A stretch of DNA of 64,000 nt from Epithemia pelagica (GCA_946965045.2 OX337241.1:2666001-2730000), one strand, 5' to 3'. Counted from the first letter of the stretch, positions 40,423-64,000 are shown. Made by a program: numbers and translations. Notes: generated from the sequence alone by a model not told the origin.

Positions 40423-41394
40423 TCATTTTCGTGTCCTTTCGTAACGGGGGGCATATTCTTTGTCGGTCGCTGCCCACATACAATTCAGTTGATTGGGCAG
40501 ATTCTCTTTCGGTTGCAATTCCCCAAACTCAACATCACTGAAATTGGGAAATGGAACAATTATTCCCCTTTCTTCGTTTTCCCCTTCTTTTCCAATTTTC
40601 TTTGTTCCCCTAAAGAGTCCAATGACAAGCACTTGATTATCTTTCAACCATGTTCTGTTTTCCATGAACATGACAGTACCGCTGTAGTCTTTCTCTGTGG
40701 ATTCGGTAACAAAATAGTAGTTACCATCTTTTCCAATGACAACGTTTTGCCCTTGAACGAGTCCACTTTGAGAATGTCCCGCTGTGGAATTTGGAAGACT
40801 GAGATTGACCGTCCCTTGGTTGCTATCGCGCCAATCAATGGCATCTTCCTTGTTTAACCCCGTTGGATTATCACCGTCCAGGTCGATTTCGAAAGCGACA
40901 AAGTCTCATGTTGCTCAACGAGTTGGCTTTGTGTTTGCGGGGGGATATCCCATGCAAAAACTTGAGTTTTTGCGGGGGATATCCCACGCAAAAACAAAGC
41001 AAACTTGTTGAGCAACATCCAAAATTTCCTTCGGCACTTGAACAAACACAGAATTGTCGGCTTCCGCTTCGTCAAACCAGTGTCGCAGTACACAGTGTGC
41101 ACAGCTCACGAGATAGTAGCTATAGTCCCTGTCTTCACTCGAGCGGTGCTTCACCAGTGAAAACGTCCACCGACCTCCCTTTCTCACAATCGGGGCAACG
41201 ATGTCATCGCTATTTGAGCGGAAATGAAAAACATCCAAGACAACGATGTGGCCACCGTGTCGAGGATACCTCTCACTTCCGCTCGAACAGCGATGACATC
41301 GTCTTGAGTTGCATCCTGTTTGGTGGCCACGTTGGCAATTGTTTCTGGCATTGAATCCTGTATAGTACTTCCAACCTGAAGACGATGAATTCAC
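40423..41394 (-). pseudogene. Family A copy A1: frameshifted trypsin-like protease pseudogene
   Basis: GGRWTFSLVKHRSS..LVSCAHCV and EKDYSGTVMF lie in different frames. An internal ~30-bp duplication (tttgcgggggatatccca x2, ~40935-40990) breaks the frame. Confidence 0.85.
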
Positions 41395-41635
41395 AACTCC
41401 GCATCGATTCGAAATATCTTACTCTTAACATGAATCTAATCGCCTGGGAATCGTAGGTGCAGCAACAAGCCTTCAAAATTCTCTCCAAGGTCGCCTGAAC
41501 TAGCGATTCGCCCGCTTCAATATCTTGCAGCGACAAAGCCACTGATATACCCTGCCACGTCCAGTCACTTTATTGGTATTATTGTCAGCATCACACATTC
41601 CCTGAACGCTGGTTATGGTCATTGCACCGTCACCG

Positions 41636-42862
41636 TCATAGGCACTCATACCCGGGCTTCTTGTGCAAGGTAGCAACCATATTTTGGTGGAAAGATCTTG
41701 ACGCGAACGTCGCTTGGCGAACTAGGATCTTGAGATTGGAATTAGTACTTGAGTAGTAGTAGTCGTGGTCATTCTCCTTTTCATTGTTGTTTGTGCTTTC
41801 TTCATTTTCAGCTTGTGGCCTTTTGTAAAGGTGGGCTCGTTCTGCGTCGGTCGCTGCCCACGTACAACTCAGTTGATTGGGCAGATCCGCTTCCGGTTGC
41901 AAATCCCCAAACACAACATCACTGAAATTGGGAAATGAAACAATAACACCTCTTTCCTCATATGCTCCGGAACTTCCAATGGTTTTCGTGCCCTTGAAAA
42001 CTCCAATGACAGACACCGCAATGCTTTGCGTCCCTGTCATGTGTGTCAAAAACATGACTGTACCGCTGTTGCCTCTTTCTCCGGATTCAACAACAAAATA
42101 GTCGTAACCATCGTCTCCATGGACAACGTTTTGCCCTTGAACGGGCGCACTGTGAGAATGTCCTGCAGTGGTATTCGGAAAAGGAAGATTGACGGTCCCT
42201 TCGTTACTAGGCCAATCGAGAGCATCTTCCTTGTTTAACCCCGTTCGATTGTCACTGTCCAGGTTGACTTCGAATGCCACAAAGTCTCGCAGTTTGTTAT
42301 CCCCCGCAAACACAAAGCCAACCTGTCGAGCAACATTCACAATTTGCTCCGGCACCTGCAGAAACAACGAATTGGCAGTGTTGTCGGCTTGCGCTTCCTC
42401 AAACCAATGCCTCAGTACGCAGTGGGCACAGCTCACTACAAAGTACCTATAGTCGTTGTCTTCACTCGAGCGGTGCTTCACCAGCGAAAAGGTCCACCGA
42501 CCCCCCTGTATCACAGGCGCGGCAAAGTCCTCTCGGGGCGGGGATAGAACAAAATTGCCCTCCGGGATGGCAGCAGCAGGAGTGGCCACCAAAAGGCGGT
42601 CCAGTTTATCGGTGATGGTGGTCACATCTTTTTTCGTGGCCATTTCCTCTCGAATTTTGGCAATCTCTTCTTTGGTGGCCATTTCCTCTCGGATCTTGTC
42701 AATGTCTTCTTTGGTGGCCATTCTTGCGGTAATTTCTTGTATTTTCAACAAGATTTGATGATAGGAATCATTCGTTTGGGACTGTGAGGAAGCGACGGTA
42801 GTGGGTGGGGTGTCTTCATGCGTCATGGGTACATTACCCTGGTCATTCTCTTTATCGTCCAT
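41636..42862 (-). CDS. Family A copy A2 (intact, 408 aa): MATKED coiled-coil repeats plus a chymotrypsin-fold serine protease-like domain
   Basis: 13-aa repeats MATKEDIDKIREE / MATKEEIAKIREE / MATKKDVTTITDK. Putative triad motifs VSCAHCV (His), LRDFVAF (Asp) and ERGNSGTVMF (Ser). No signal peptide. Confidence 0.8.
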   Translation of the reverse strand: MDDKENDQGNVPMTHEDTPPTTVASSQSQTNDSYHQILLKIQEITARMATKEDIDKIREEMATKEEIAKIREEMATKKDVTTITDKLDRLLVATPAAAIPEGNFVLSPPREDFAAPVIQGGRWTFSLVKHRSSEDNDYRYFVVSCAHCVLRHWFEEAQADNTANSLFLQVPEQIVNVARQVGFVFAGDNKLRDFVAFEVNLDSDNRTGLNKEDALDWPSNEGTVNLPFPNTTAGHSHSAPVQGQNVVHGDDGYDYFVVESGERGNSGTVMFLTHMTGTQSIAVSVIGVFKGTKTIGSSGAYEERGVIVSFPNFSDVVFGDLQPEADLPNQLSCTWAATDAERAHLYKRPQAENEESTNNNEKENDHDYYYSSTNSNLKILVRQATFASRSFHQNMVATLHKKPGYECL

Positions 42863-43610
42863 TTTTTCAATGTGAATGGTTTTTGTGGCACGGGAACAAC
42901 AAAAACCACTTCGAGCTTCGAAAAGACTCTTGTTCGGAAACTTTACTGACTCCTGCCGGCCTTGTCCAAATCCTGCACGTTGTCAATGGTACCGATTGTT
43001 TGTACCGATTGTTTGTTTGTATGTATGTATCTGCAAATGTCAGGTTCGTTTGTTGTGGTACCACGATTTGTGTCTGGTTGTGCGGGTTTTGTTTTCCAAC
43101 GCTTCAAGCTTCGAGTGTGCGGCTTCGAGTGTGTGCATGATGAAGCTTTTCCCACCAACAGCGCGGAAGCGGAGGAGGAGGGAGGAGGCGTGTGCGTTGG
43201 CGAAGGCTAAGCGATACTACGCCCTAGCGCGAGTACTTGTGGATAGTGATTCGTTGTGTACTCAAATAGCATCTACTACTCTAGAGGTATTAGGCATTCA
43301 CGATCACGATTCATAAATTTGACAACGCCCGGAAAAACTACGACCGGTGGCGCACAAGTGAGTTTGGCGCCAATCGTGGGATCTTCCTTGTGTATGTGTG
43401 GGCACGATGTACCTAAATGTGGAGGCGCTCGGTTGGCTTGGGTAGCGGAGATGCGAATCCGTGAAACCGATTCTTCGTCTCACATACATCATACATCATG
43501 GTTCCAATCCAGAGTTTGTCGATCCGCAACACACTCTAGATGAAATTTTGTCCCTTTCAAGCGTCCACCAAGATTGACTGTGTCTCCAAAAAGGCACCCG
43601 GGTTGAGATG

Positions 43611-44330
43611 ATGGTGGTGCCACTACGTTGAGCAATACGAGCAGTGCCAATCGCCATCATTTTTCGCGGAGGAATTGGATATGGTCCAACCACACCACAA
43701 CAACACGGCTTCAGCGACCAATTGGACGTCGTCCAGTGCCATGCAATTTGGTCGATTTGTTACAACAACACGGGGTTGTCGGTCTTGCTTGTTCAAGATG
43801 GTTTGACTCCACGCAATTCGTCGGTCGATGTTTTTTTTACAGTCTCATGGCCACGAATGATATTCGCCATCAAAAGATCCAGGACTCTTGAATATTCGAC
43901 TCGGGCAACAACAATTGGCAGCAGTGGCGGAACCACCACCATTCCGGACATTGCTCGGTTGTTGACACAACAACAACAAGTCAATCTAGCCTTGCCCAAT
44001 GCATTGCCATCCCGATGCTTGGCCAATTTATCACAGCAACATCCGAACGCGTCGTCTAAACGAAAATTTGGAAGAATTGGGTTCGGCCTTGGCCCGGCCT
44101 TGGCCGGTGAAACAGAAGGGTGATCTTCCACATTCATTATGGTCGTGTGTGGTTTTGCTACCGTTTCTTTGTGTATACAACAAGAGGAGAAGAAGAATCC
44201 TGTAATACTTATAATAATAGACTTTACAGCCAAAAATAAACCAGCGAGTGGCCCATGAGATCAAGTCGAGAGTACTCAAGTAAGTTTAGCTTCCACAAGT
44301 ATGGTAAACTGGAGTAGGTCAGCAGTGGGT
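43611..44330 (+). pseudogene. Degenerate direct copy of the 3' end and 3' flank of the Myb-like gene (~39380..40270)
   Basis: Shared strings gttgagcaatac.agcagtgccaatc, agatccaggactcttgaatattc, gaagaattgggttcggccttgg and ccagcgagtggccc; multiple frameshifts. Confidence 0.85.
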
Positions 44331-44347
44331 GTGGGTGTGTAGCTCTA

Positions 44348-45181
44348 CTAAAAGTTGTCGATGAGGGCTTTTTCTTTCTTTTTCTTTCTGTTCTTTTTCT
44401 CTATCTTCTTTTTCTCTTTGTTCTTTTTCTTACGCTCTTCATTTAGTTTTTGGGAATATTCAGCAAGCCACGAACGAATGCTTGTTGCCGAATAGCGGTC
44501 ATATTCATCGTGTACCTTTTTGGGAGCCTTCTGGTTGCACGACAAGTAAATCTGCGTCCATTCTCCCGATGGAATTTTGCCCTCTGACACAGGATGGCTA
44601 AACACAGAATGGCCAAAAGTGTACATACCCAACGCGTAGGGTTTGTTGGTGTCAGACTCCTCGTAGTACGCCACAAGGAGGCACTTTCCGGAATTGACCT
44701 TGCGCGTGTACACTGCAGCGCAATTCTTCAAAGCAATTCCCGCGGCTGCGATTGCATGGGATGTTCGCAGAACCCTGCACTTGCCGGAGTCAGAAAGCTG
44801 AAGCAAATAATCATACCTGACTAATGCTTTATGCTTCAGCTGCGCCTGAATAGCCCGATCTCGAATGTAGTTAACCAGCTGACGGACATTCAGACTCTCC
44901 CAATCTTCTGGCCAAGCTTCGTTGTACTCTAGTTCATCAATGGAACCAAGGTACGAACCTAGTTCATCGATGGAACCAAGGTTTTCTGACCATTCGGTGT
45001 AGTACTTGATGAGGTGCTGACGCGGAGGGCTGTCCTTTGGGGACTGCAGGATTCTCTCAATGTGATGCCACTCGTTGGTGTTGGCGGTGGGGAAATATGC
45101 TTGCCTTTGCAGCGAGCTTGGGAGAGGAAACCAATACCGACTTTCACCAAAGCTGTCTGGATAGACTCCTCGATTGATGTC
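44348..45181 (-). pseudogene. Family B copy B1, 3' half (PcfJ-like domain, Lys-rich tail), separated from its 5' half by LTR element 1
   Basis: INRGVYPDSFGESRYWFP...LKNCAAVYTRKVNSGKC is collinear with 62394..63100. Confidence 0.9.
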
Positions 45182-45890
45182 TGGCAGAATTCTCACCAAC
45201 AACTAGGTTGTGGTGGAATCTACAACTCATCGACTGATGCTAGTATTTTATGGCATCCGATGACATTTTCGTAAAAGTGAGAAAAGAATGACGGCATGCT
45301 CGCAGACCTTTTAATTTCGGCCAAGGCATGCTCGCAATGCACGCGTTATGAGCGACCGATCGGATATTAATTATGGCCCAACACGTGCGCGCCCATTATT
45401 CTCAAGCGCGCGCAATCAATATCCGAGTACGCACCTCCACGACTTAGCCCAACGGCCTAAGTAACCGAAGCACGAATCACGATCACGCGAGACCATATCT
45501 CTATTCCCACAAATCAAAGAATGCAAACAGCAACGCGCCAAGGAAACTACCTATATCATGACAAAGCAAGAGCTGTTGGCATTGGTATATGATATACAAG
45601 TGCATATACTTCCAATACACAATATCCATGTCTACTCCAACCATACCAGTCCTGTCAGCGCCATGAATATATCAGTCATGCACCCTGACCAGACCTGCAC
45701 ACCCACACACACACCGTAGTCCTAAAGCTCACAATCATTAACATTACCATATCATCACGTCTTCAGTGTCCTGACTATCCCTACGATAGAACCCTTGGGT
45801 TTCCTTTGTTCTCTGACCCGTGGAGAACCTTGGTATCAGTTGGTAATCGATTGTGGCTCTTCTAGAGCGTGTATTGATGAATCTCTACTA
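45182..45890 (+). repeat. 5' LTR of element 1 (TGGCAG...CTACTA)
   Basis: Near-identical to 50628..51336; two substitutions noticed by eye. Confidence 0.95.
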
Positions 45891-45904
45891 GATTAACAGT
45901 CTCA
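45891..45904 (+). promoter_or_regulatory. Putative primer-binding site GATTAACAGTCTCA
   Basis: Abuts the LTR end and is identical in both elements. Its reverse complement TGAGACTGTTAATC looks like a tRNA-Asn(GTT) anticodon arm. Confidence 0.7.
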
Positions 45905-46466
45905 CTGCTTATTTCCCTGCAGTTGCAATTGAAACCTTACTTACCCATCAACACCCGTTACAGATTGAGCTACCACAACAAACAAGAGTTAGAGGACAAA
46001 GCTACTCAACCCATCAACAGGGCCAGCCTGGCTAAGGCTAGGGTCACTAACCCTCTCCTATTCCAGGACCTCAAGCTGCACCAGGACTCCGTACAACTAC
46101 CTTCCCAATACTCATCCAACCAGTGAACCACTTTTGTTGAGGACTACTACGAGTACCACGAAGAAGCCGCCTTCTGTTACTGAATCTCCGGATCAACTCG
46201 ATCACCGCAACGAGTCTGGAAGTGACCAAGAATAAGTAACTTTAAGTAGTTTTCACACCAAACCGGAGACAAAACAAAGTTCCGCACATCCGGGTTACCT
46301 TTTGGACATCACAACACACATCCGGGTCCTTCATACGTGGCACACACGTGGCACATCCGGGTTCACAAGGCACACCACACATCCGGGTTACAAAACATAA
46401 CTAAAGTTTTCGACTAAGACATCACAGGACACATATCAACATATCTTATCACCAAGTCAAGCAATC

Positions 46467-49400
46467 ATGGAACCAACTACACAGACCACACCAGAGTTCA
46501 ACCCTAATCAAAGTATATCTGATCAAGAAGTCTTTGATCATATTACTCAGGTGTTGTTCAACTTTTCCAAGGAAAGGGTCGATGTACTCGTGAAATGGAT
46601 GCACCATCATGCTTTTGATGATATCCTTAGTATCATTGAACATATGGCAATTGACCCTGAGAAGAACATGGATAGTATGACAAAATACAAGTCAGGAAAA
46701 CAAATGCACGACCTACATGTCAATACAAGCCAGCAGATCAAGTTGCTTGCCCATTGGTTCCGACAAACGAGTATCGACATTCAGGGTATACCTTCCAAGG
46801 CAACCTGGATGAATCTGACCAAGGCAGAATTTGATCTATGGAGGATAAACACTGACTTTCGCTCCGGAAGCCCTATCAATGACCCAGTATCACCTATGAA
46901 ATCTCCATCCCATTCGACGTCACCCAAATCGTTTAGTACTACTTCTGCTGCATCACAGTCCCAACTGGACCTAACCGCATTCAAGAAGGGAACCAAGCGT
47001 GACGCTATGGCATATGAAACATTCAAGGATGAACGATACTACGACACGTTCTGGAGGACTTTCAAGACCACAGCAAAAGCCCAAGGTTTATCTAATGTTC
47101 TTGACTTCCGATACAAGCCACCGACGAATGATACGTATGCAACAGAACTTTTCCAAGAGCAACAAATCTTCCTATACTCCGTCCTTGTGCGCATCATCCA
47201 GACTGATCAAGGAAGAGCTTATGTTCGCGAACATGAACATGATAAAGACGCACGAGCAGTGTTACAGAAGCTTCACACATTGCATACGAAGTCAGACTTA
47301 GCAAAACGAGAGGTCCTACGATTAACCAATTACATCTCCAACCTTCGCCTCGATGATACATGGCGTGGATCATCACGTCAATTCTTGCTTCATTTCCAAG
47401 ACAAACTACGTTTACTCGATAACCTTGTTGATCTCTCTGATCGCATACCTGATCACACCAGGATGACGTTTCTTATGCAAGCTGTCGAGAAGGTACCTGA
47501 CCTTCGCAGAGTTAAAATCTTGGACAACGTCGTCAACACGAAGTCTGGAGCAAAGTCTTTATGTTATCAGTCGTACTTCTCCATTTTGATGGACGCAGCA
47601 TATGACCATGATCAAGTCACGCAATCTTCTGCAACTGGTCGTCGTCGTAGTGTCAAGCAACACGAGCAACACGAAACACAACATGATATTGAGGGATCCC
47701 TTCAGGAAGACAATGCATATAAGATAAACAATACCAACGTCCAAGATGACAACACGGCATCTCCAAAAGCCAGTCTTCCTCGTGACCTATGGTTTAAACT
47801 TCCTGAGGATGCTCACAAGGTGATTGTTGAGTATAACAAGAACGTGCAAGCTCCTACTCCAAGTCCAAGAAACGTACAGCAACACTCCCTTGACATTGAT
47901 CCTGAACCTGATCCTGACCCTGGTCAAGATGTTTTCGACGACCTGGACAACCTCACATATCCGCAGGATGATTCCGATCCAGCCACCCATCTCATCCATC
48001 AAGCAATGACGTCAACCGACCTCAATCATCCAGCTTCTGATTTGTCTAATGTTCTATCCAATGCCGCATCCAAGACGAGTAAGAAAGTTAGTTTCAAACA
48101 GAAAGAGCACAAGCAGAAGATCCACATGGCTCAGTACATGTTCTCTCGAAAGTCAACCTATACTGGGAATCAACTCATCGATCGCAGTGCCAATGGTGGT
48201 TTAGCCGGAGCTGATATGCGTATCCTTTCCAAGACAGGTCGTAACATCACGACTGTGGGAATCGACAACCATGAGCTTACTGGTCTCCCTATTGTCACTT
48301 GTGCTGCCAAATTTGAAACTAATGACGGGCTAATTGTCGGCATCTTCAACGAATATGCATACTATGGAAAAGGACAGTCTATACATGCGCCTTGCCAATT
48401 AGAACATTATGGACTATCTGTGGATGAACGTTCTGTCAAGGTGGATGGGAAGCAACGCATCACTACTCTTGATGGACATGCTTTACCTCTCTGTATCAAG
48501 GATGGTCTTGCCTATATTCAGTATTTGGGTGTTCCTTCTGATGACGACATGGACAGATCTGCTAAAGTTGATGGCAAACAATGCATCACTATACTTGGTG
48601 GACGTGCTATCCCTCTTCACAGCAAAAATGGATTATCATACATCCACTCCCTTGGTATCCCCAGTGATGATGACATGGACACATTACCCCAAATCATCTT
48701 CACGTCACCTGACATCTGGGATCCTGGTGTTTTAGATCATTTGCATCCTGCCTCATCACCTGACAGTGCTTCTAACTGGCAACAAGTCAACACTGATGGT
48801 AGTATGACGCATCACCCATATGACAATGAAAATTATGGGGAGTACACTGATTGTGACGTCTGTAACCTCACTCACCTTTTGGATTTACCTTACGATCATG
48901 GACCTGATACACCTTCCTTCTCCTCACCCCTTATTGGAGACTCTTGTTCCAAACTGTACCATCAAGATCACAACATGAGGACTGAGAAGCGTTATCCTAC
49001 CGTTAAGAAGATGCCTTACGTCATCATAAACGTTTCTGGTCATCTTCCTCTTCAGATCCTCAATGGTCGCCCTCCCGATTTTTCCCAACCCCTTTTCTTC
49101 CTTCTCTGCGACAAGGTCTTCTCCTGTACCGAATCTTATGCACCCTATCTTTGTCCGGATGCCTCTTCAGGAAAGGAGTCACTTCCAAATAAACCCAATG
49201 ACAAGCAAGCTGACACCGTTTTCATTTGTAGCAAAGGTGAAGATCCATCCGCACAAATGCCTACGATCAAGAACTGCGACAAAATTTTTGGACAAGCGTT
49301 TCCTTACAAACCAGCAGAGGGAAATGGGGAGCAACAACAAGCATGTATAATCCAACACGTCAATTTAGAACAAGACGCTTTCAAGCAAGAAGCATGTATC

Positions 49401-50720: not shown

Positions 50721-51336
50721 AAGTGAGAAAAGAATGACGGCATGCTCGCAGACCTTTTAATTTCGGCCAAGGCATGCTCGCAATGCACGCGTTATGAGCG
50801 ACCGATCGGATATTAATTATGGCCCAACACGTGCGCGCCCATTATTCTCAAGCGCGCGCAATCAATATCCGAGTACGCACCTCCACGACTTAGCCCAACG
50901 GCCTAAGTAACCGAAGCACGAATCACGATCACGCGAGACCACATCTCTATTCCCACAAATCAAAGAATGCAAACAGCAACGCGCCAAGGAAACTACCTAT
51001 ATCATGACAAAGCAAGAGCTGTTGGCATTGGTATATGATATACAAGTGCATATACTTCCAATACACAATATCCATGTCTACTCCAACCATACCAGTCCTG
51101 TCAGCGCCATGAATATATCAGTCATGCACCCTGACCAGACCTGCACACCCACACACACACCGTAGTCCTAAAGCTCACAATCATTAACATTACCATATCA
51201 TCACGTCTTCAGTGTCCTGACTATCCCTACGATAGAACCCTTGGGTTTCCTTTGTTCTCTGACCTGTGGAGAACCTTGGTATCAGTTGGTAATCGATTGT
51301 GGCTCTTCTAGAGCGTGTATTGATGAATCTCTACTA
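50628..51336 (+). repeat. 3' LTR of element 1
   Basis: 709 bp, follows the PPT and is followed by the ATGTC TSD. Confidence 0.95.
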
Positions 51337-51980
51337 ATGTCGCGGCGAATAATATCGAGGCGTTCATAAACAAGTTCTAGATCTTGGTCAATAACATCAT
51401 CGAACACAAATTCTAGATCTTGGTCAATAACATCATCGAACGACTCGTGCGCAAGTTCTAGATCTTGGTCAAGAACATCATCGAACGACTCGTGCGCCTT
51501 GGCGCCAATCTCTTCCGAAATTCTCATCAAATCCATTTTCCGGTTTGCTACCCAGTTGCGGTAGGTTTCCTCGATGTCGAAAGAACCGAGGCCACTGATG
51601 AAGAGGTCCCTGCCTCGACTGTATTGCCGCCATTCTTTCAGATGGCGAGAACGGATATTGCTGATTTGCATTTCCAAGCACACCCGAGGAATGCCACATA
51701 TCTTCTCCAACGTACTGAGAACTTGTTGGTCCTCCTTGCCCAACAGATGATGGTCAGGCACGATTGTCTGGTAAAGATCCGGGGAACTCCAAGGTGCTTG
51801 ATCGTTTTCGATGGTATCATCCAGTAGTAAAGTCCGGGGCGACAGTTTGCTCGACGCCGGTGAAGTCTGCGACTGCGACGCAGCTGAGCTACTGGACAGT
51901 TGCCTCAACAATGCGGATACCCTTGTCGCCCGAAAGGAGAGCCCTCCACAGGAAGATCGATGCCAAATAAAGGCAGCCAT
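51337..51980 (-). pseudogene. Family B copy B1, 5' half
   Basis: MAAFIWHRSS...EETYRNWVANRK...LDIIRRD is collinear with 63100..63800. The SAP-like segment is truncated and followed by FDDV(L/I)DQDLE x3. Confidence 0.9.
51371..51490. repeat. Three in-frame tandem copies of ttctagatcttggtcaa(t/g)aacatcatcgaac
   Basis: Seen directly in the sequence; absent from copy B2. Confidence 0.9.
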
Positions 51981-52402
51981 GGCTATCCAAATATCCGGCA
52001 AGATGACTTTGGTTTGCAAGATAACTCGGAAACCTGAAAAAAAGACACGGTTACTTCAAAACCTGAGATGTGTTGCGCTGCATAGAAATTGTGCACGCAG
52101 GCTGGGTACTGAGGCGGCATGGCGTGTAAGCGATACACCCCATCATCCACCTATCGACCGAAATGTACTCGCACTTGTTTTTTGGTTTATTCTAACAACC
52201 CGACATACTTCTCACCGCTCGGGCGTGATCCTTCTCCGTGACAGCGAGAAACACGCCCCAGCGGGGGTGGCTTATTGCTTCACAGAAACTAGTAACTCGA
52301 AACCACCTCCGCTGGGGAGTGAAATGGTTGGGGAAAACAAAACCCGCGCGACCAGCCACAAACCGTGGTACCACACCAAACGAACCTGGCATTTGCAGAT
52401 AC

Positions 52403-52470: not shown

Positions 52471-52502
52471 ATACAATCGTAACTCGACAAGGCCGGCGGG
52501 AG

Positions 52503-53299: not shown

Positions 53300-53321
53300 A
53301 AGCTTATTTCCCTGTGGTTTC

Positions 53322-54101: not shown

Positions 54102-54129
54102 TTACTCATAGTTAACTCCCGTCCTCTCA

Positions 54130-54420
54130 AAACCTTTCCAAGACTTAAACTCAACGCACATCCGGGTACCCTTGGTCGCACAACACGCCACACATTCCCG
54201 TCAAATCGCGAAAATTCGGCGAAAATTTGTTGAAACTCGGCGAAAATTTGTCGGAATCAACGGAAATTTCCAGGAGTCGCACATCACAACACACATCCGG
54301 GTATCACATACGTGGTACATACGTGGCACACGTGGTACATCCGGGTTCACATCACATCACACATTAAATAAACCACATCACACCGCACATTAAATAAACA
54401 TCGAACCAACCAAATAACAT
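54130..54420 (+). promoter_or_regulatory. Repeat-rich pre-gag spacer (ACATCCGGGT x3, ACGTGG x3, GAAAATT x3)
   Basis: The same motifs occur in element 1 at 46285..46388 (CACATCCGGGT x4, ACGTGG x2). Confidence 0.55.
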
Positions 54421-54421
54421 C

Positions 54422-57400
54422 ATGGATCCTCAATCACCCAAGACACCTACGACTCCTAAGGGAGAAGATAACCAAGACAATGTCTCGGACACAGACCTAT
54501 TCGACCACATCATATTTACTGTCTGCCAATTCTTTACCAAAGAAAGGGCCGACTACTTAATGAAGTGGATGAAATACCATGGTTTTGAGAACATTACCCA
54601 TGTTATCTCGTATATGCAAACTAATACCGAAGAATCCATGAAGGAACTGACACAATACAAGGTCAACAAACAGACACATGATCTACAAGGCCCCACAAGA
54701 CAGCAGATCAAGCTCTTGGCTTATTGGGCCATATACAAGACCAATGAAATTCAAGACGAGCTATCCAATAGCGACTGGATGAACCTAACGAGGAAAGAGT
54801 TCAACACTTGGAGGATCAACACAGATTTCTCTAAGGGACCACCTAGCCAAGTTCCAGTCTCGCCAATGAAGTCACCGTCATCTGTGAAATCTGTCAGCAC
54901 AGTTACTGCCGCATCCCAATCTCAACAAGACCTTACAGCATTCAGAAAGGGAACTAAGCGCGACGCAACTGCATATGAGATATTCAAGGATGAACGATAC
55001 TACGATTCATTCTGGCGTGTATTCAAGACTACAGCTAAGGCTCAAGGCCTATCCAACGTTCTGAATTTCAAATACACACCACCCCATGATGATGAGTATG
55101 CCGAAGAACTTTTTCAAGAGCAACAAGTATTTCTTTACTCCGTTCTTGTCCGTATCATTCAGACTGACCAAGGTCGAGCCTATGTACGTGAAAATGAACA
55201 TGATGAAGATGCGCGTGCCCTATTGCAGAAGTTACACTCTTTGCATACCGAATCCGACCTAGCAAAACGAGAGGTCCTCCGTTTAACCAACTACATTTCC
55301 AATCTACGTCTTGACGACGCATGGCGCGGAACAACACGTCAATTTCTTCTACACTTTCAAGAGCAGCTACGTTTGCTAGACAATCTAGTGACATTGTCTG
55401 ATCGCATCCCTGATCATACCAGGATGACCTTCCTCATGCAAGCTGTAGAAAAGGTACCTGATCTCCGCCGAGTCAAGATCTTGGATAATGTGGTGAACAC
55501 CAAATCCGGTGCAAAATCCCTTTGCTATCAATCATACTTCCGTCTCCTTCTAGACGCAGCTTATGACCATGATCAAGCAACCCAGTCATCTGTTCATAGT
55601 CGCCGTCGACATGTCAAACAACGTGAATCACTATATGGCCAAGATACAGATGCTGACATAACCTCACAAGATGATATGGAGTATCATGTCCACAACACCA
55701 CAGCGACATCTGAATCTCCATCCTCTTCGTCCAAGGTTAGTCTACCGCGTGACCTATGGTTCAAACTTTCTGAAGAAGATCGCAAGTTGATCATTGAGTA
55801 TAACAAGATGATTCAAGCACCTTCATCAACAACACCGAGGAAAGTGCAAACACATGCCCTCGACATTGATCCGGAACCTGATCCTGACCCCAACCAAGTT
55901 GCATCTGATGACGACTCACCTGGCGTAGTCCCTGAGCATCCAGATGATTCAGATCCGGTTACACAATTTATCAACCAAGCCATGACGACTGATATCAATC
56001 ACCCGGCAACTGACCTGACTAGTGTTCTTTCTAACGCCAAGTCCAAGACGAGCAAGAAGGTTACTTTCAAAGCCAACATGCATAAACAAGCAGGACATGT
56101 TCCACGCTATCTGTTTTCCAGGAAATCTACTTTACCAGGAAATCAATTGATTGACCGTGGTGCTAATGGAGAACTTGCTGGTTCTGACATGCGCATCCTT
56201 TCTAAGACTGGCCGCCATATCACTATTGTGGGTATTGATAACCATGAACTTACTGGACTTCCTGTCGTCACATGTGCCGCAAAGTTTGAGACCAATGATG
56301 GACCTATTGTCGGCATCTTCAATGAGTATGCTTATTATGGAAAGGGCTTATCTATCCATGCTCCTGGTCAATTCGAGCATTTCGGACTTGCTGTTGATGA
56401 ACGATCTGTTAAAGTTGATGGTAAACAACGCATCACTACACTTGATGGTCGTGCTATACCCCTTCACATCAAGGATGGGTTAGCCTACATCCACTCCTTG
56501 GGTATCCCCAGCAACGATGACATGGATACCTTACCTCAGATCATCTTCACGTCACCCGACACATGGGATCCTGGTGTTCTGGACCATTCGTATTCTCCCA
56601 CACCCTCTGACAATGATGCTGATTGGAAACACGTAAAGACTGATGGTAGTATGTCGAACCATCCATATGACAACTATGGGGAGTACACTGATCGTGTTGT
56701 TTGTAACCTCAATCTCCTTTTGGATCTCCCATACGATCATGGACCTGACGACGCACCCTTCTTTTCTATCTATGCTGACGCAGAAGGTAATGATCCTACA
56801 CTTCATGCCTCTGTCCACCGTCGTTACCAGGAAGCGTATGACTGGAAGAAGTTCCGTCCATTCTTTGGTTGGCAATCTGAAGATGTTATTGCCGATACAT
56901 TCAAGCACACTACACGTAATGGTAGCATTACTTTTGACCACGACACCCTCAAGAAACATTTCAAGGCTCGCAATCCGGTCCTTAATATACCTCGACGTCA
57001 TGAACCCGTTGCTACGGACTCGGTTTTCTCCGACACCCCTGCTGTTGACCATGGAGGTAAAGTCGCACAAATCTTTGTTGGTCGAGATACTCTGGTTACT
57101 GATATCTATGGGATCAAGTCAACCAAACAGTTTGTCAATACTCTTCAGGACAACATCCGGTTTCGTGGTGCCATGGAGACTCTTATCAGTGATGGTGGTT
57201 CATCTCTCATCTCTCAAAAGGTCAAAGACATTCTTCGCACTTTGCTTATTGGGGAGTATCGATCCGAACCTTATCATCAACACCAGAATAAGGCTGAAAA
57301 CCGTTACCAGACCGTTAAACGTATGACCAACGCTCTCATGAATGCCACTGGTTGCCCTGCCAACACCTGGCTTCTTTGCCTTGAGTATGTCTGTGACTTA

Positions 57401-60109
57401 TTGAACCATACGTCATCACCCACCCATTCCGGTCGCACTCCTCTTGAGGCTCTCTCCGGACGCCCACCCGACATTACTCATCTCTTGTTCTTTCCTTTCT
57501 GGGATGAGGTTTACTACCGTGTCGACCCCGCTGAACCCAATTCTGGTTCATATCCATCTTCTTCTGATGAGAAACTTGGCCACTGGGTTGGTTTTGCTCA
57601 CAACGTTGGTGATTCTTTTACTTGGAAGATTCTCACCCAGGATAACCAGATAATCTACCGTTCTGCCGTTCGCCGTGTTGAATCCACTACACCTAACCTA
57701 CGTGTGGATCGACCTTCAGGGGAGGATTCGTCTGAGAAGGATGACAATGATAAGCAAGCTGACACTGTCTTCATTCGCAGTGATAGTGAAGATCCATCCA
57801 AACCAATGCCCACGATCGATTTTGACGACATGATAGGACGCACATTCCTATGCGACACAGAAGAAAATGGGGAGCGACACCGTGCACGTGTCATCAAACG
57901 AGTCATTGATCTTAATGAAGAAGCAACGAAACAGGAAGAACGTGTCAAGTACATCTACCGAAAGACAAATTCTGATGTTGATGAGATGATATCCTATAAT
58001 CAACTCATGGAGTATATCGAACGAGATAACCAAGCTCAAACCTCTGGAGATAATCTTTTCAGGTTCAGGGACGTCATTGCCCATCAAGGCCCACTGAGCA
58101 CAACTGATCCAGATTACAAGGGGAGCAAATATAATTTGCTTGTTGATTGGGAAACTGGGGAGACTACCTATGAACCTTTATCACTCATCGCCAATGATGA
58201 TCCGATCACTGTAGCAATTTATGGAAAGAAACATGATTTACTCAACGAACCTGGATGGAAGCATTTGAAACGTTATGTCAAAACAAGCAAACGTCTCATT
58301 CGAGCAGCCAAACAGTCAAGGATTAAACAAGTTCACCATTCCGTCAAGTATAAGTTTGGATTCCAAGTACCACGCAATTATGAGGAAGCTGTCGCTCTTG
58401 ATAAACAACATGGCAACACAAAGTGGCAGGATGCAACAGAATTAGAATTGTCACAGATCCAGTCCTACAAGACATTCAAGGATTTTGGGAAAGCCATCTT
58501 CATTAAAGGGAAAGTATCCAATGCACCTGAAGGATATCATAAGATACGTGTACATCTTGTCTTTGACGTAAAACATGATGGACGACATAAAGCAAGACTT
58601 GTCGCAGATGGACATCTCACAAAAGAACCTGTTGAGACAATCTATTCAGGTATTGTTTCCATTCGCAACCTCCGCATTGCCTTATTCCTGGGTACTTTGA
58701 ATGACTTGGAAATATGGGGAGCAGATATTGGAAACGCATATCTGGAAGCCTTGACAGGGGAGAAAATTTTCACTGTCGCAGGACCTGAATTCAAGGAATT
58801 AGAAGGTCACATCCTGATTATATACAAGGCACTTTATGGATTGAAGTCATCAGGCGCACGCTGGCATGATGTCTTATTCGATGTTTTGACAGACATGGGA
58901 TTTTCACCAAGCAAAGCAGATCCGGATATCTGGATGAGGAAAGCACCTGGAGAAGACTGTTACGAATACATTGCCGTATACGTTGATGACTTAGCCATTA
59001 TTTCTACTGATCCTGGGAATATCTGCAAGATCCTGAAGGAGAAATACAACTTCAAACTCAAAGGAGATGGACCTATTGATTTCCACTTGGGATGTTGTTA
59101 CACCAAGGATTCTGATGGAACATTAGTAGCAGATCCAAGACGCTACATTGGTAAGATGATGGACACTTTCGAACGAATCTTCAAGGAGAAACCCAAGAAA
59201 GCCAAAACACCTCTTATTGGTGGAGACCATCCTGAATTGGATGATTCTGAGCTCCTTGATGAAGAAGGTACTAGCCATTTCCAAACTCTGATTGGACAAC
59301 TCCAATGGGTGATCACTATTGGTCGTTTCGATGTCTTCACCGCTACAATGACGCTATCACACTTTCGTGCTGCTCCGAGGAAAGGACATCTTGATAGAGC
59401 CAAGCGTATCTATGGATACCTTGCACATCTCCCAGAAGGCGCAATCAGATTTAGGATTGGAGAGCCTGATTATTCAAGTCTTCCTACCCAAGAATTTGAT
59501 TGGACTCGCACTGTCTATTCGAATGCAAGTGAACGTACTCCCGAAGACTGCCCAACACCTCTTGGTCGCTATGTTACCACAACTCATTATGTTGATGCCA
59601 ATCTCATGCATGACATAGTCACTGGTAAATCCGTCACTGCTGTTCTACATTTGTTGAACGGAACACCTATTGATTGGTACAGCAAGAGACAGAGCACGGT
59701 GGAAACTGCTACCTATCGATCCAAGTTTGTGGCTGCAAGGACAGCAATAGATCAGATTACAGAATTACGACATTCTCTCCGCTACCTTGGAGTACCTATC
59801 CGAGAGCGAAGTTACATGTACGGAGATAACAGATCTGTTGTGCTCAATGCAACCGTTCCTCATTCCATACTATCCAAGAGACACCATCTTCTGTCATACC
59901 ACCGAGTTCGTGAAGCCATCGCAGCAAAGTATGTTGCATTCTACTGGAAAGATGGAAAGACCAACCCTGCCGATTTCCTTAGCAAACATTGGGATTTCGT
60001 ATCTATTTGGCCCATGCTCAAGCCATTGTTGTTTTGGAAAGGAGAAGTTCAAGACCTCAACAAATCCAATGATGACAAGGCTGAAACAACGAGTTGTGGG
60101 GAGTGTTAG
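54422..60109 (+). CDS. Gag-Pol polyprotein, 1895 aa (PR, IN, RT, RNase H)
   Basis: PR LIDRGANG; IN ATDSVFSD..LISDGG..AENRYQ; RT ADIGNAYL..YVDDL; RNase H YVDANL..YGDN..NPADFLSK. Confidence 0.96.
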   Translation: MDPQSPKTPTTPKGEDNQDNVSDTDLFDHIIFTVCQFFTKERADYLMKWMKYHGFENITHVISYMQTNTEESMKELTQYKVNKQTHDLQGPTRQQIKLLAYWAIYKTNEIQDELSNSDWMNLTRKEFNTWRINTDFSKGPPSQVPVSPMKSPSSVKSVSTVTAASQSQQDLTAFRKGTKRDATAYEIFKDERYYDSFWRVFKTTAKAQGLSNVLNFKYTPPHDDEYAEELFQEQQVFLYSVLVRIIQTDQGRAYVRENEHDEDARALLQKLHSLHTESDLAKREVLRLTNYISNLRLDDAWRGTTRQFLLHFQEQLRLLDNLVTLSDRIPDHTRMTFLMQAVEKVPDLRRVKILDNVVNTKSGAKSLCYQSYFRLLLDAAYDHDQATQSSVHSRRRHVKQRESLYGQDTDADITSQDDMEYHVHNTTATSESPSSSSKVSLPRDLWFKLSEEDRKLIIEYNKMIQAPSSTTPRKVQTHALDIDPEPDPDPNQVASDDDSPGVVPEHPDDSDPVTQFINQAMTTDINHPATDLTSVLSNAKSKTSKKVTFKANMHKQAGHVPRYLFSRKSTLPGNQLIDRGANGELAGSDMRILSKTGRHITIVGIDNHELTGLPVVTCAAKFETNDGPIVGIFNEYAYYGKGLSIHAPGQFEHFGLAVDERSVKVDGKQRITTLDGRAIPLHIKDGLAYIHSLGIPSNDDMDTLPQIIFTSPDTWDPGVLDHSYSPTPSDNDADWKHVKTDGSMSNHPYDNYGEYTDRVVCNLNLLLDLPYDHGPDDAPFFSIYADAEGNDPTLHASVHRRYQEAYDWKKFRPFFGWQSEDVIADTFKHTTRNGSITFDHDTLKKHFKARNPVLNIPRRHEPVATDSVFSDTPAVDHGGKVAQIFVGRDTLVTDIYGIKSTKQFVNTLQDNIRFRGAMETLISDGGSSLISQKVKDILRTLLIGEYRSEPYHQHQNKAENRYQTVKRMTNALMNATGCPANTWLLCLEYVCDLLNHTSSPTHSGRTPLEALSGRPPDITHLLFFPFWDEVYYRVDPAEPNSGSYPSSSDEKLGHWVGFAHNVGDSFTWKILTQDNQIIYRSAVRRVESTTPNLRVDRPSGEDSSEKDDNDKQADTVFIRSDSEDPSKPMPTIDFDDMIGRTFLCDTEENGERHRARVIKRVIDLNEEATKQEERVKYIYRKTNSDVDEMISYNQLMEYIERDNQAQTSGDNLFRFRDVIAHQGPLSTTDPDYKGSKYNLLVDWETGETTYEPLSLIANDDPITVAIYGKKHDLLNEPGWKHLKRYVKTSKRLIRAAKQSRIKQVHHSVKYKFGFQVPRNYEEAVALDKQHGNTKWQDATELELSQIQSYKTFKDFGKAIFIKGKVSNAPEGYHKIRVHLVFDVKHDGRHKARLVADGHLTKEPVETIYSGIVSIRNLRIALFLGTLNDLEIWGADIGNAYLEALTGEKIFTVAGPEFKELEGHILIIYKALYGLKSSGARWHDVLFDVLTDMGFSPSKADPDIWMRKAPGEDCYEYIAVYVDDLAIISTDPGNICKILKEKYNFKLKGDGPIDFHLGCCYTKDSDGTLVADPRRYIGKMMDTFERIFKEKPKKAKTPLIGGDHPELDDSELLDEEGTSHFQTLIGQLQWVITIGRFDVFTATMTLSHFRAAPRKGHLDRAKRIYGYLAHLPEGAIRFRIGEPDYSSLPTQEFDWTRTVYSNASERTPEDCPTPLGRYVTTTHYVDANLMHDIVTGKSVTAVLHLLNGTPIDWYSKRQSTVETATYRSKFVAARTAIDQITELRHSLRYLGVPIRERSYMYGDNRSVVLNATVPHSILSKRHHLLSYHRVREAIAAKYVAFYWKDGKTNPADFLSKHWDFVSIWPMLKPLLFWKGEVQDLNKSNDDKAETTSCGEC

Positions 60110-60886
60110 AATTCTCACCGTCTATGGTGGTTAGATTCTACATCTCATCGATTCCCCATGTCACATAGCCTCGTGCTATCGCATCATGCCATCTAGCTTC
60201 GAGCTATGTTCCCTAGCTTCGCGCTATATCGACCTATATTTCTTCGCAAATCATGAAAAGTGAGAATAGATTGACGAACTCACTCTCAAGACTAAACTGG
60301 GTCGTGCGGTATTACAACGGACGTAAATTTGGCCGTTGCTCGGACATTATACTAACGCCCTAAGCGTACGCGCCCGAAATCATCGAGCGCGCCCAAGCGA
60401 CATCCGAGCGCTGTCAGCATCTATCCGACCCGACGGTCTAAGTATCCCAAGCACGATACACGATCACGCGAGACCATATTTCCATTCCCACAATCTCCAA
60501 ATTGTCAACAAGCTGCGCGCCATGAAAACAACTATGCCAACCCAAAGCAAGAGCTGTTGACCCTGTATATGTTATCCGTCCACATATACATGTCATATAC
60601 ATCACATGAATCGACTCCAACTATTCCAAACCTGTTGCCGCCAAGAACCTATGACACATGACCCTTGGCAGGACCGAACATTTCACGTAGACCTATCGTA
60701 GTAATCAACATACAATCTAACAATATCACCATTTATCACATCTTCTTTTGTATCCCGACTATCCTTCTGATAGACTTCGACTTGCTTGCTTCTCTGACCC
60801 TGAGAAGCTTGTATTGGTTGGTGACCTACCTGATTGTCTGCTCTACCGAGCATCAATGTCCCTACGATTCAGAAAGAATTGTAACA
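60104..60886 (+). repeat. 3' LTR of element 2
   Basis: Offset 7601 bp from the 5' LTR; follows the PPT. Confidence 0.95.
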
Positions 60887-61006
60887 GATTAACAGTCTCA
60901 AAGCTTATTTCCCTGTGGTTTCATGGATACTAACGAGCTTATCACTCCTGTACGACAGATCTATCGAGCCAAACTGCATCCCGGGCAGCCCGATACCCTG
61001 GTGCAG
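60887..61006 (+). mobile_element. Second PBS, leader and first 28 codons of ORF0 after the 3' LTR (start of a truncated tandem unit)
   Basis: Matches 53286..53405, then joins host sequence at CAG followed by cagtaaagtttgcc x2. Confidence 0.92.
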
Positions 61007-61117
61007 TAAAGTTTGCCCAGTAAAGTTTGCCCAGAAAGTGTCTTTTGGAAGAAGCAAGAAGTGGTTTGCGATCCAAGTCTGTCGTTCCCGTGCCACAAAA
61101 ATCATTCGAACGTAGCC

Positions 61118-62276
61118 ATGTCGAATGAAGAGGCCCCAGCCGATGCCGTCGCTTCCACACTTTCAGACATGAATGAGGCGCTCCGTACTCTTACGACGAA
61201 AATACAAGACGATTTTGCCACTATTCGAGCCACAATGGCGACCAAAGACGATTTTGCCTCTATTCGAGCCACAATGGCGACCAAAGACGATTTTGCCAAT
61301 ATGCAAGACACATTGGCCACTAAAGGAGATGTCACCACCATAACCGAGAAACTGGACCGCCTTTTGCTGGCCACTCCTGCTGCTGCCATCCCGGGGGGTG
61401 GTTTTGTTTATCCCCGCCCTTTGCCCCGGTTGCGAAAGAGGGAGGTCGGGGGACGTTTTGAAACACCGCTCGAGTGAAGACAGCCAATATAGCTACCATG
61501 TAGTGACCTGTGCACACTGTCTACTGCGACACTGGTTTCACGAAAGGCAAGCCGACGACACTGCCAATTCTGTGTTTGTTCAAATGCCGAAGCAAATTGT
61601 GGATGTTGCTCGACAAGTTGGTTTTGTTTTTGGGGAAGATGACAAACTGCGAGACTTTGTGGCATTCGAAGTCAACCTTGACGGTGTAAATCCACTGGGG
61701 TTAAACAAGGAAGATGCCCTTGATTGGCCCGATAGCAACCAAGGGACTGTCAATCTCAGTCTTCCAAGTTCCACAGCGGGACATTCTAAAAGTGGACCCG
61801 TTCAAGGGCAAAACGTTGTCCATGGAGAAGATGGGAACTTCTATTTTTCTGCCGAAACCAGAGAGAAAGGCAACGGCGGTACTGTCATGCTTTTGACAAA
61901 CATGGCAGTGATAGAAAAGAATCAAGTGTCTGTCATTGGACTCTTCAAGGGGACGAAAGCCACTAGAACTTCCGGAGCATATGAAGAAAGAGGTGTTATT
62001 GTTCCATTTCCCAATTTCAGTGATGTTGTGTTTGGGGATTTGCAACCGAAAGCGAAGTTGCCCAATCAACTGAGCTGTACGTGGGCAGCGACCGACGCAG
62101 AACGAGCCCACCTTAACAAAAGACCAGAAGCTGAAAATGAAGAAAGCACAAACGACAATGAAAAGGAGAATGACCACGACCACTACAACTCGAGCCTAGT
62201 TCGCCAAGCGACGTTCGCGTCAAGAACCTTCCACCAAAATATGGTTGCTACCATGCACATGACCCCCGGGTATTAG
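61118..62276 (+). pseudogene. Family A copy A3: frameshifted, with the putative catalytic Ser replaced by Gly
   Basis: MATKDDFASIRAT repeats are in the first frame and VTCAHCL / LRDFVAF in a second. Indels at ~61405-61460 total about -17 nt versus A2; REKGNGG replaces ERGNSG. Confidence 0.85.
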
Positions 62277-62393
62277 TGCTTATGATGGGGGCTGTGCAAT
62301 GGCCATAACCAGCGTCCAGGGAATGTATGGTGCTGCGGGCACTTCCCGCTTGTCTACTTCCGGAGTCTCTAAATGGCAATTGCCTCTAATGAT

Positions 62394-63800
62394 TTATTGA
62401 TTCTCGTCTTTCAGTGTTTGGGAATATTCAGCAAGCCACGAACGAATGATTGCCGTATAGCGGTCATATTCATCGTGTACCTTTTTGGGAGCCTTCTGGT
62501 TACACGACAAGTAAATCTGCGTCCATTTTCCAGATGGAATTTTGCCGTTTATCATGTTCAAGGGTTGGTCAAAAGTGTACATACCCAGCGCGTAGGGTTT
62601 GTCGGTGTCAGACTCCTCGTAGTACGCCACAAGGAGGCACTTTCCGGAATTGACTTTGTCCGCGTACATTGCAGCGCAATTCTTCAAAGCAATTCCCATG
62701 GCTGCGATTGCATGGGATGTTCGCAGAACCCTGCACTTGCCGGAGTCAGAAAGCTGAAGCAAATGATCATACCTGACTAATGCTTTATGGTTCAGCTGCG
62801 CTTGAATAGCCCGATCCCGAATGTAGTTAACCAGCTGACGGACATTCAGACTCTCCCAGTGTTCCGGCCAAGCTTCGTTGTACTCTAGTTCATCAATGGA
62901 ACCAAGGTTTTTTAACCATTCGGTGTAGTACTTGATGAGGTGCTGACGCGGAGGGCTGTCCTCTGGGGACTGCAGGATTCTCTCAATTTGTTTCCACTCG
63001 TGGGTATTGGCGGTGGGGAAATATGCTTGTATTCGCAGAGAGGTTGGGTGAGGAAACCAGTATGGACTTTCACCTTTCGTGCCAGCACAGATTCCTCGAT
63101 TGATGTCGCGGCGAATAATATCGAGGCAATCACAACCACGTTCCCGATCTTGGTCCAGAAGAGACTGTTTTAGCCCTGTGGTTCTGGCTATTCTTTCCAA
63201 AAGTCGAGCCGGTGCATCGAACGACTCGTGCACCAAGAGGCGATGAATTAGATCTCCTTTTTTCATGCCTGAAGCCTTGGCACCAATCTCTTTCGAAATT
63301 TTCTTCAAATTTACAGCAGTTATGTAGAAGTCGACCATGCTAAACCAAAAATCCGCTTTCCGGCTTGCTACCCAGTTGCGATAGGTTTCCTCAATGTCGA
63401 AAGAGCCGAGGCCACTGATGAAGAGGTCCTCGCCTCGACTGTATTGCCGCCACTCTTTCAGATGGCAAGACTGGATATTACTTATTTGCATTTCCAAGCA
63501 TACCCGAGGAATGCCACATATCTTCTCCAGCGTGCTGAGCACTTGTTGGTCCTCCTTGTCCACCAGATGATGGACGGGCACAATTGCCTGGTAAAGATCC
63601 GGGGAACTCCAAGGTGGCAGAGCGTGCTCGATGGCATCATCCAGTAGTAAAGTCCGGGGCGACAGTTTGCTCGACGCCGGTGAAGTCTGCGACTGCGACG
63701 CAGCTGAGCTACTAGACAGTGGCCTTAATAATGCGGATACCCTTGTCGCCCGAAAGGAGAGCCCTGCACACGAAGATCGATGCCAAACAAAGGCAGCCAT
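62394..63800 (-). CDS. Family B copy B2 (intact): probable mitochondrial presequence, SAP-like motif and PcfJ-like C-terminal domain
   Basis: MAAFVWHRSSCAGLSFRATRVSALLRPLSSSS has no acidic residue in the first ~53 aa. SAP-like TAVNLKKISKEIGAKASGMKKGDLIHRLL. PcfJ-like AMGIALKNCAAMYADKVNSGKCLLV...WTQIYLSCNQ. The upstream ATG at 63935 is in frame here but not in B1. Confidence 0.8.
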   Translation of the reverse strand: MAAFVWHRSSCAGLSFRATRVSALLRPLSSSSAASQSQTSPASSKLSPRTLLLDDAIEHALPPWSSPDLYQAIVPVHHLVDKEDQQVLSTLEKICGIPRVCLEMQISNIQSCHLKEWRQYSRGEDLFISGLGSFDIEETYRNWVASRKADFWFSMVDFYITAVNLKKISKEIGAKASGMKKGDLIHRLLVHESFDAPARLLERIARTTGLKQSLLDQDRERGCDCLDIIRRDINRGICAGTKGESPYWFPHPTSLRIQAYFPTANTHEWKQIERILQSPEDSPPRQHLIKYYTEWLKNLGSIDELEYNEAWPEHWESLNVRQLVNYIRDRAIQAQLNHKALVRYDHLLQLSDSGKCRVLRTSHAIAAMGIALKNCAAMYADKVNSGKCLLVAYYEESDTDKPYALGMYTFDQPLNMINGKIPSGKWTQIYLSCNQKAPKKVHDEYDRYTAIIRSWLAEYSQTLKDENQ

Positions 63801-64000
63801 GGCTTTCCATTTATCCGGCAAGATGACTTTGGTCTGCAAGATTACTCGAAAACCTGAAAAAGACACGGTTACTTCAAAACCTGAGATGTGCCCCGCATAA
63901 AAATTGTGCGCGCAGGCTGGGTATTGAGGCGGCATGGCGTGTTAGCGATACACCCCATCATCCACTCATCGACCAAAATGTACTCACTTTTTGTAGCTTC

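Follow-up and report, generated by a model that had tools for sequence, protein, structure and literature searches.

The window examined here, a 64,000-nucleotide stretch of the Epithemia pelagica genome (G000:C17:2666001-2730000), contains in its right-hand part a cluster of repeated copies of two unrelated genes, one encoding a coiled-coil, protease-like protein (A) and the other a PcfJ-like protein (B). Positions are given as window coordinates, with negative values to the left of the window, and the layout was checked by listing open reading frames (ORFs), by repeat finding, and by six-frame searches of the whole 60.5-Mb assembly. Copies A1, A2, B1, A3 and B2 are each present at or near the positions assigned to them in a first-pass annotation made from the window sequence alone, and the similarities between copies are far above chance (tblastn E 1e-23 to 0). 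The same annotation proposed that the arrangement continues past the right end of the window, and A4 and B3 are located there; two further intact copies, B0 and A0, lie 3–9 kb to the left of the window. Its description of two unrelated families that are recurrently adjacent, show copy turnover and include pseudogenes is borne out: all four B copies have an A copy 0.06–3.4 kb away, in three different relative orientations, and the intact copies number two for A and three for B. A third gene, X, is unrelated to either family and is present as X1 within the window and X0 at its left end; the two proteins share 82–88% amino acid identity, with no stops in either, and match no Pfam family.

Self-comparison (blastn) of 90 kb comprising the window and its flanks revealed an inverted segmental duplication of at least 10 kb, whose arms are 78–89% identical and are separated by ~35 kb of unique DNA. 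Because X was copied along with A and B, this older duplication is not specific to an A-B cassette. A younger tandem duplication (61348-63809 and 64477-67026, 90% identical) gives the units A3-B2 and A4-B3. Since A3 and A4 have in common both a Ser266Gly substitution and a TAG at codon 406, A was already dead when this unit was duplicated, and was copied together with a live B. B2 and its upstream sequence also form a direct repeat of B1, as the annotation had stated, with 90% identity between 51529-52252 and 63349-64065, and B1 and A3 are head to head across approximately 0.6 kb of host sequence as described, their starts being ~610 bp apart once an intervening retrotransposon (element 2, see below) is removed (51981-52497 plus 61007-61099).

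Divergence at synonymous sites (dS) between B2 and B3 is 0.019 in the 3' half of the gene and 0.16 in the middle part, a contrast indicative of gene conversion. Among paralogues the ratio of nonsynonymous to synonymous divergence (dN/dS) is 0.4–0.8 at dS of 0.18–0.31 and the intact copies are still free of stops, with frames remaining open at dS of 0.25–0.31; this pattern is in keeping with purifying selection that is weak, or with partial redundancy. Between A2 and B1, the spacer includes a 574-nt segment (43197-43770) that is 89% identical to the left arm, a higher value than that of either coding gene, and beside it a degenerate copy of the last ~160 codons of X (43770-44328). Coordinates of all features are collected in Table 1.

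Table 1. Features of the A/B cluster and related sequences in E. pelagica. Positions are window coordinates unless prefixed; LTR, long terminal repeat.
Feature	Position	Strand	Description
X1	37361-40054	+	897 aa, Q/N/S-rich; neighbour unrelated to A/B, co-duplicated
A1	40423-41211	-	Pseudogene; 5'-truncated, first ~110 codons gone; several in-frame stops (7 TGA counted, stops also at the Asp193 motif)
A2	41636-42862	-	Intact, 408 aa; N-terminal MATK[ED]D repeats, then protease-like domain (His147, Asp193, Ser266)
A2-B1 spacer	42863-44347		A-upstream element 43009-97; segment 43197-43770; degenerate X 3' copy 43770-44328
B1, 3' part	44348-45181	-	PcfJ-like half
Copia element 1	45182-51336	+	Inside B1; LTRs of 709 nt, 2 differences; target duplication ATGTC
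B1, 5' part	51342-52019	-	Likely start at Met, 51980; short tandem repeat in place of SAP-like segment
Copia element 2	52498-61006	+	Between B1 and A3; terminal repeats of 908 nt, 3 differences
A3	61100-62282	+	Pseudogene; frameshift near codons 95-123; Ser266Gly; TAG at codon 406
B2	62394-63935	-	Intact; ORF of 513 aa; conserved start probably Met46 (63800)
A4	64277-65514 (beyond window)	+	Pseudogene
B3	65629-67125 (beyond window)	-	Open frame, 527 aa in G000
X0	352..-2314	-	Intact partner of X1 on left arm; 889-codon open frame
B0	Left of window, left arm	+	Intact, 510-aa frame
A0	Left of window, left arm	+	Intact, 451-aa frame
A paralogue	C3:950222-951502		24-26% identity (both distant paralogues)
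A paralogue	C6:2525243-2526331		24-26% identity (both distant paralogues)
A fragments	C17:2868880-2870600		No B nearby
Inverted duplication, right arm	36252-52039		X1, A1, A2, spacer, B1
Inverted duplication, left arm	-8929..1454		B0, A0, X0
Inverted match	-2687..1454 vs 40401..36252
Inverted match	-4471..-2950 vs 43307..41817
Inverted match	-6169..-5573 vs 43770..43197
Inverted match	-8175..-7081 vs 45181..44050
Inverted match	-8929..-8417 vs 52039..51529

Two very young Ty1/copia retrotransposons account for ~14.7 kb of the 23.6 kb between A1 and the right end of the window. Both have direct long terminal repeats (LTRs) and an integrase upstream of the RVT_2 reverse transcriptase domain, and element 1 is flanked by a target duplication. 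The internal ORF of element 1 (1417 aa) is degenerate and has ~71% DNA identity to that of element 2, whose 1895-aa polyprotein is intact, with rve at residues 899-952 followed by RVT_2 at residues 1365-1584; within each element the two terminal repeats (709 nt in element 1, 908 nt in element 2) are 99.7% identical to each other. The element 1 junction lies within the conserved DIIRRDINRG motif of the B family, and when element 1 and one copy of ATGTC are excised in silico, B1 becomes a single open frame of 503 codons. B1 was therefore intact until this very recent insertion, and its inactivation results from a transposon and not from gradual decay, which tells against the selfish-module interpretation.

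No target duplication was found at the ends of element 2. By comparison with element 1 its LTR is expected to end near 53285, and we note that its repeats (52498-53405 and 60099-61006) extend beyond this point, across the primer-binding region, and also take in the first 84 nt of an extra ORF (53322-54101). The 3' repeat of element 2 resembles the beginning of another, truncated tandem copy more than it does an ordinary 3' LTR.

A second haplotype is represented in an ENA assembly. One contig of that assembly (L008) corresponds to 56078-74000 at 99.994% identity, and another (L007) is a divergent allele with 94–98% identity. L007 does not contain 43376-61100, a 17.7-kb segment with spacer sequence, B1 and both retrotransposons, such that A3 and A2 are head to head. 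Its B3 allele is split by a 3.1-kb insertion (L007:4121-7198; site 66729-66737) with a 9-bp target duplication, CTCGGGTGT; the insertion has one 897-aa ORF containing RVT_2, with no LTRs and no DNA similarity to copia elements 1 and 2. The haplotypes are therefore unequal in copy content, and transposon insertions into B copies have been tolerated twice, independently. In L008, B3 (10001-11583) is called as two products of 376 and 158 aa, and in G000 (L003:1626-3209) it is one 527-aa frame; because L008 and G000 are 99.994% identical, this split is likely to be a single-base assembly difference.

The A proteins A2 and A0 and the paralogues encoded on C3 and C6 share one plan, in which an N-terminal repeat or coiled coil is followed by a domain of ~220 residues with the motifs ..CAHC.., ..RDF.. 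and ..GNSG.., corresponding to His147, Asp193 and Ser266. This trio is retained in all four, and the serine is replaced by glycine in A3 and A4. The language-model neighbours of A are all PA-clan proteases of the chymotrypsin fold (scores 0.92–0.93, with only ~100 shared features), and each of the three motifs aligns locally with its counterpart in Deg/trypsin genes of the same genome, although these hhalign matches extend only over the length of the motif. A is most likely a cytosolic serine protease of the chymotrypsin fold. The N-terminal part of A2 contains the repeats MATKEDIDKIREE, MATKEEIAKIREE and MATKKD, and further repeats are present in A0; in both, two to four MATK[ED][DE] hexads are each followed by one heptad, giving a period of 13 residues. 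The MATKDD beta-layer motif and the structure of the trimeric alpha/beta coiled coils that it forms have been described (Hartmann et al. 2016, eLife; PMC4786415). In profile searches of the PDB the matches to A are confined to the coiled coil, where solved beta-layer constructs are found (5APW, E 0.0068; 6H9L, E 0.017), and the same segment matches the Pfam CCDC90-like family at E 0.004. With its MATK[DE]D-type hexads repeated between heptads the segment qualifies as a beta-layer coiled coil, and it probably makes A a trimer. These results uphold the annotation of A as a coiled-coil protease, insofar as three catalytic motifs accompany repeats that match solved beta-layer structures.

Two further features of A were noted. 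The alleles of A2 (41636-42862 and L007:13550-14788) differ at dS 0.048 in the protease-like part, and at dN 0.23 and dS 0.28 in the first ~100 codons, which contain the MATKED repeats, a difference suggestive of shuffled repeats or of conversion by a different copy. A cysteine is located one or two residues before the stop in A2 (41636-41650; ..ECL) and in both distant paralogues, L005:2231-3346 (-) (..VCLL) and L006:1946-3508 (+) (..LCFF). A3 and A4 have lost this cysteine because of their TAG at codon 406; it may serve as a C-terminal signal, for lipidation or for some other purpose. The C6 paralogue is head to head with a 496-aa gag-like ORF containing a CCHC zinc knuckle (L005:3728-5218, +).

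Relatives of A outside its own organism were not recovered in word-based protein searches, and scans of JGI metagenome contigs with an A alignment pattern, IMG/VR scans for A and tblastn of A2 against phage records gave no matches.

B2 consists of a presequence-like N-terminus, a W..RG.D.F..GLG.FDI module, a weak SAP/Rho_N-like motif, and a PcfJ-like C-terminal domain. The PcfJ family (PF14284) is named after pcfJ of the Enterococcus plasmid pCF10. B2 itself scores 16.6 bits against PF14284 (E 0.0071), below the gathering score of 25 bits, and in a six-frame scan of the genome B2 and B3 score 18.9–19.1 bits. The connection to PcfJ is seen more clearly through relatives. An exhaustive search of 1.84 billion proteins with a B profile identified 126 clusters at E <= 0.001, 55 of them at E <= 1e-10; many of the hits are 400–560 aa long, with alignments spanning both the N-terminal module and the C-terminal domain. 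Pfam PcfJ is matched by 50 of the 125 sequences comprising B2 and its relatives, and one relative (P0101), found by the B profile at E 3e-6, scores 35 bits to PcfJ, above the cut-off. Clostridium plasmid genes annotated as PcfJ domain proteins are found by tblastn at E 8e-3, and the atlas neighbours of B share 187 of 256 features. B is thus distantly homologous to the PcfJ family by way of intermediates. As to the SAP part of the earlier SAP/PcfJ assignment, there is no match to a SAP model in B, and Rho_N scores below its cut-off in both B2 (E 0.063) and B3 (E 0.0016). Conservation of the SAP-like segment among family members is poor, and in B1 a repeat stands in its place.

From Met46 the N-terminus of B2 is rich in arginine and serine and contains no acidic residues, and its relatives are similar; this is probably an organellar presequence, and we infer that B is imported into an organelle. 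One of the B clusters includes an MMETSP transcript of the diatom Stauroneis constricta, which shows that another diatom expresses the B family. When the whole genome is searched with a broad family profile, B is found at four places, all inside this cluster, and B is accordingly the sole representative here of a family found more widely in eukaryotes, amplified locally. Word-based protein searches with B2 recovered only copies from the same organism, and neither an IMG/VR scan for B nor tblastn of B2 against phage records gave any matches. The proposition that both genes carry modules known mainly from phages and conjugative elements is only partly right, as beta-layer motifs are also present in eukaryotic DUF1640/CCDC90 proteins, and B belongs to a eukaryotic subfamily and is not a recent acquisition from phage. 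A literature search found no functional study of the PcfJ domain, the results being almost only C. elegans pCFJ plasmids. An AlphaFold model of B2 built from a shallow family alignment was too poor to use (predicted local distance difference test score, pLDDT, 36.6). The most distant B-type hits are on two contigs (L031 and L032; ENA ERZ25074135; 545 kb and 131 kb; GC content 56%) that are dense in short ORFs with no Pfam family, together with ankyrin, RNase H and 2OG-Fe(II) oxygenase genes, and L032 has two adjacent B-like ORFs. These contigs may derive from a large virus, or from a eukaryote whose genes were poorly called.

To look for conserved linkage of A and B, we examined eight other loci encoding B relatives (L009, L010, L011/L026/L027, L028, L029, L030, L031 and L032), with flanks of 0.4–10 kb. 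No A-like ORF was found beside the B relative at any of the eight, even when filters were switched off and matches at E <= 1 to 10 were admitted, and those neighbours with a named family are ordinary genes (EMG1, FAD monooxygenase, MGDG synthase, a protein kinase, a U-box protein and GILT). Conversely, there is no B near the A paralogues on C3 and C6 or near the A fragments at C17:2868880-2870600. The conserved linkage expected of a selfish two-gene module is thus not apparent, and unlinked homologues are largely what the first-pass annotation had itself named in advance as telling against its proposal. Nor is the amplified unit the pair itself with both partners intact.

A single RNA library, a marine metatranscriptome, contains near-identical sequence, in the form of four 151-nt contigs located between 43444 and 44239; these are in the A2-B1 spacer, over the degenerate X 3' copy, and none is on A2 or B1. 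The library type of the other matching runs is unrecorded.

We conclude that the region is probably a structurally unstable cluster that arose by ordinary local segmental duplication together with transposon insertions, and not a mobile or selfish cassette. A and B would be adjacent because they were neighbours that were duplicated together, and relaxed constraint, dead copies and tolerated transposon insertions would be expected because duplication creates redundancy. The events may have occurred in the following order. An ancestral stretch would have contained three adjacent genes, B, A and X, and an inverted duplication would have placed two copies of it around ~35 kb of unique DNA. On the right side, local events would then have produced A1 as a partial copy in tandem and brought another A copy, in inverted orientation, next to a copy of B. 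This A copy would have lost its catalytic serine before the A-B unit was tandemly duplicated to give A3-B2 and A4-B3, with gene conversion still homogenising B2 and B3. Finally, two copia elements would have inserted very recently, one of them inside B1.

Several observations weigh against this interpretation or parts of it. The pairing of all four B copies with an A neighbour is more than a single duplication requires, both families are fast-evolving, and the short flanks (0.4–10 kb) of B relatives on metagenomic contigs could hide a more distant A. The apparent restriction of A to one genome rests on word-based and pattern-based searches, the exhaustive profile search having covered B alone. 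With regard to A as a protease, its best Pfam profile scores, with one member each, are not significant (Trypsin_2, E 0.076; Peptidase_S7, E 0.14), and an AlphaFold model of A2 from a shallow family alignment is too poor to use (pLDDT 31.1). No RNA contigs over A or B were found in the runs compared.

One alternative is that A and B form a coupled module, whether toxin/antidote, defence or some other form of conflict, in which a protease is kept beside an organelle-targeted partner and an arms race drives expansion and decay. A coupled module would explain why an A copy stands next to every B copy in the genome, whether the arrangement is tandem, convergent or divergent, and why B1/A3 and B2/A4 are divergent over just 0.3–0.6 kb, where a shared promoter is possible. 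It is also consistent with dN/dS values of 0.6–0.8, with the difference in copy number between haplotypes, and with the divergence of the A2 N-terminal coiled coil between haplotypes (dS 0.28) relative to the rest of the gene (0.048). However, there is no linkage at the eight B-relative loci or at the C3 and C6 paralogues of A, the duplication also carries X, and A3 and A4 were inactive already when they were copied with intact B2 and B3. In addition, intact copies are unbalanced, B is an ordinary single gene in other organisms, and searches of Pfam, PHROGs and NCBIfam matched neither family to known toxins or defence systems, the hits for A and B there being below threshold. We therefore consider a coupled module unlikely, and the selfish, toxin-antidote or defence function originally suggested for the pair is not sustained, given that linkage is not conserved, that X was co-copied, and that a dead A was copied with a live B. 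To the more specific proposal, that recurrent A-B adjacency has been selected and that a trimeric coiled-coil protease with an organelle-targeted PcfJ/SAP-like protein constitutes a lineage-specific conflict module, we attach little credence. If it were correct, as for example in nuclear-organelle conflict or a toxin-antidote system, the module would be undergoing expansion, recombination and decay in this diatom, and the copy content of the haplotypes would reflect ongoing drive or balancing selection.

A second alternative is that a large mobile element or an integrated virus carries the A-B unit as cargo, and that the unit has spread by transposition. Three points are compatible with mobility: the PcfJ domain is found most often in phages and conjugative elements, transposons occur frequently within the cluster, and the C6 paralogue of A adjoins a gag-like ORF with a zinc knuckle. 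This alternative is nonetheless very improbable, as all copies of B and the close copies of A are on one chromosome, eight of the nine within ~76 kb and fragments of a further A 135 kb away. Moreover, the duplication boundaries fall within host genes and take in X, no A-B unit is bounded by terminal repeats or target duplications, and there are no relatives in IMG/VR contigs or phage records. The 35 kb between the arms is also unique, and is not repeated elsewhere in the 90 kb compared.

That the repeats are an assembly artefact, with haplotigs or collapsed repeats joined in one scaffold, is hardly tenable: a second, divergent haplotype does exist, and the region is in short contigs in three runs from the same organism (library type unrecorded), some of which jump between A1 and A2, but the copies differ by 10–25% and have distinct lesions and flanks, a long ENA contig reproduces 56078-74000 at 99.994% (possibly from the same data), and the alternative haplotype has the same kinds of copies in the same order.

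With local duplication as the preferred explanation, the main result is a correction, in that an apparent amplified selfish cassette reduces to neighbouring genes that were duplicated locally and then received transposon insertions. The B1 insertion is a clean case of very recent gene inactivation by a copia element; the other haplotype does not have it, and it can be reversed exactly in silico. The eukaryotic family that B defines is an uncharacterised one of 126 clusters with at least one diatom member, and B could be one more organelle protein whose ancestors belonged to a family known chiefly from phages and plasmids. To our knowledge, the architecture of A, in which a beta-layer coiled coil is joined to a protease-like domain, has not been described previously.

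Comparison with known systems places the components of the cluster as follows. The two copia insertions have the LTRs and the integrase-before-RVT_2 polyprotein typical of Ty1/copia elements, and element 1 has the 5-bp target duplication; element 2 differs in that it has none and in that its terminal repeat continues ~120 nt beyond the LTR. Both are insertions in the cluster and not members of the A or B families. Relative to PA-clan proteases, including Trypsin_2/HtrA-type and small viral or bacterial S1-like enzymes, A has His, Asp and Ser motifs whose order and spacing are as they should be, but no significant profile match and neither a PDZ nor any other known accessory domain; we know of no other chymotrypsin fold partnered with an N-terminal beta-layer coiled coil. 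Among beta-layer coiled coils, A is distinguished by having the motif ahead of a protease-like domain in a eukaryote, and in the C6 paralogue an 11-residue repeat takes the place of the 13-residue one. The C-terminal ~200 residues of B share with PcfJ-like proteins a conserved core around L(R/K)VLR(S/T)...L.NCA..Y, whereas B is not on a plasmid or phage, and the subfamily to which it belongs is eukaryotic, starts with a presequence-like stretch and has an additional conserved module in the N-terminal part.

At the level of the locus, A and B resemble eukaryotic toxin-antidote pairs in being tightly linked, fast-evolving and variable in copy number, but differ from them in that their linkage is not conserved, units with a dead A and a live B are present, a third gene was co-duplicated, and no toxin or antidote family was detected. 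The closer likeness is to segmentally duplicated gene clusters of eukaryotes. Here too the duplicated blocks ignore gene boundaries and carry neighbours together, with identities graded from 78 to 90%, and here too there is gene conversion, dead copies stand beside live ones, insertions are tolerated, and segments are present in one haplotype and absent from the other. This cluster is unusual among them in having no B copy outside it, and in bringing together an orphan protease-like gene and a PcfJ-like gene.

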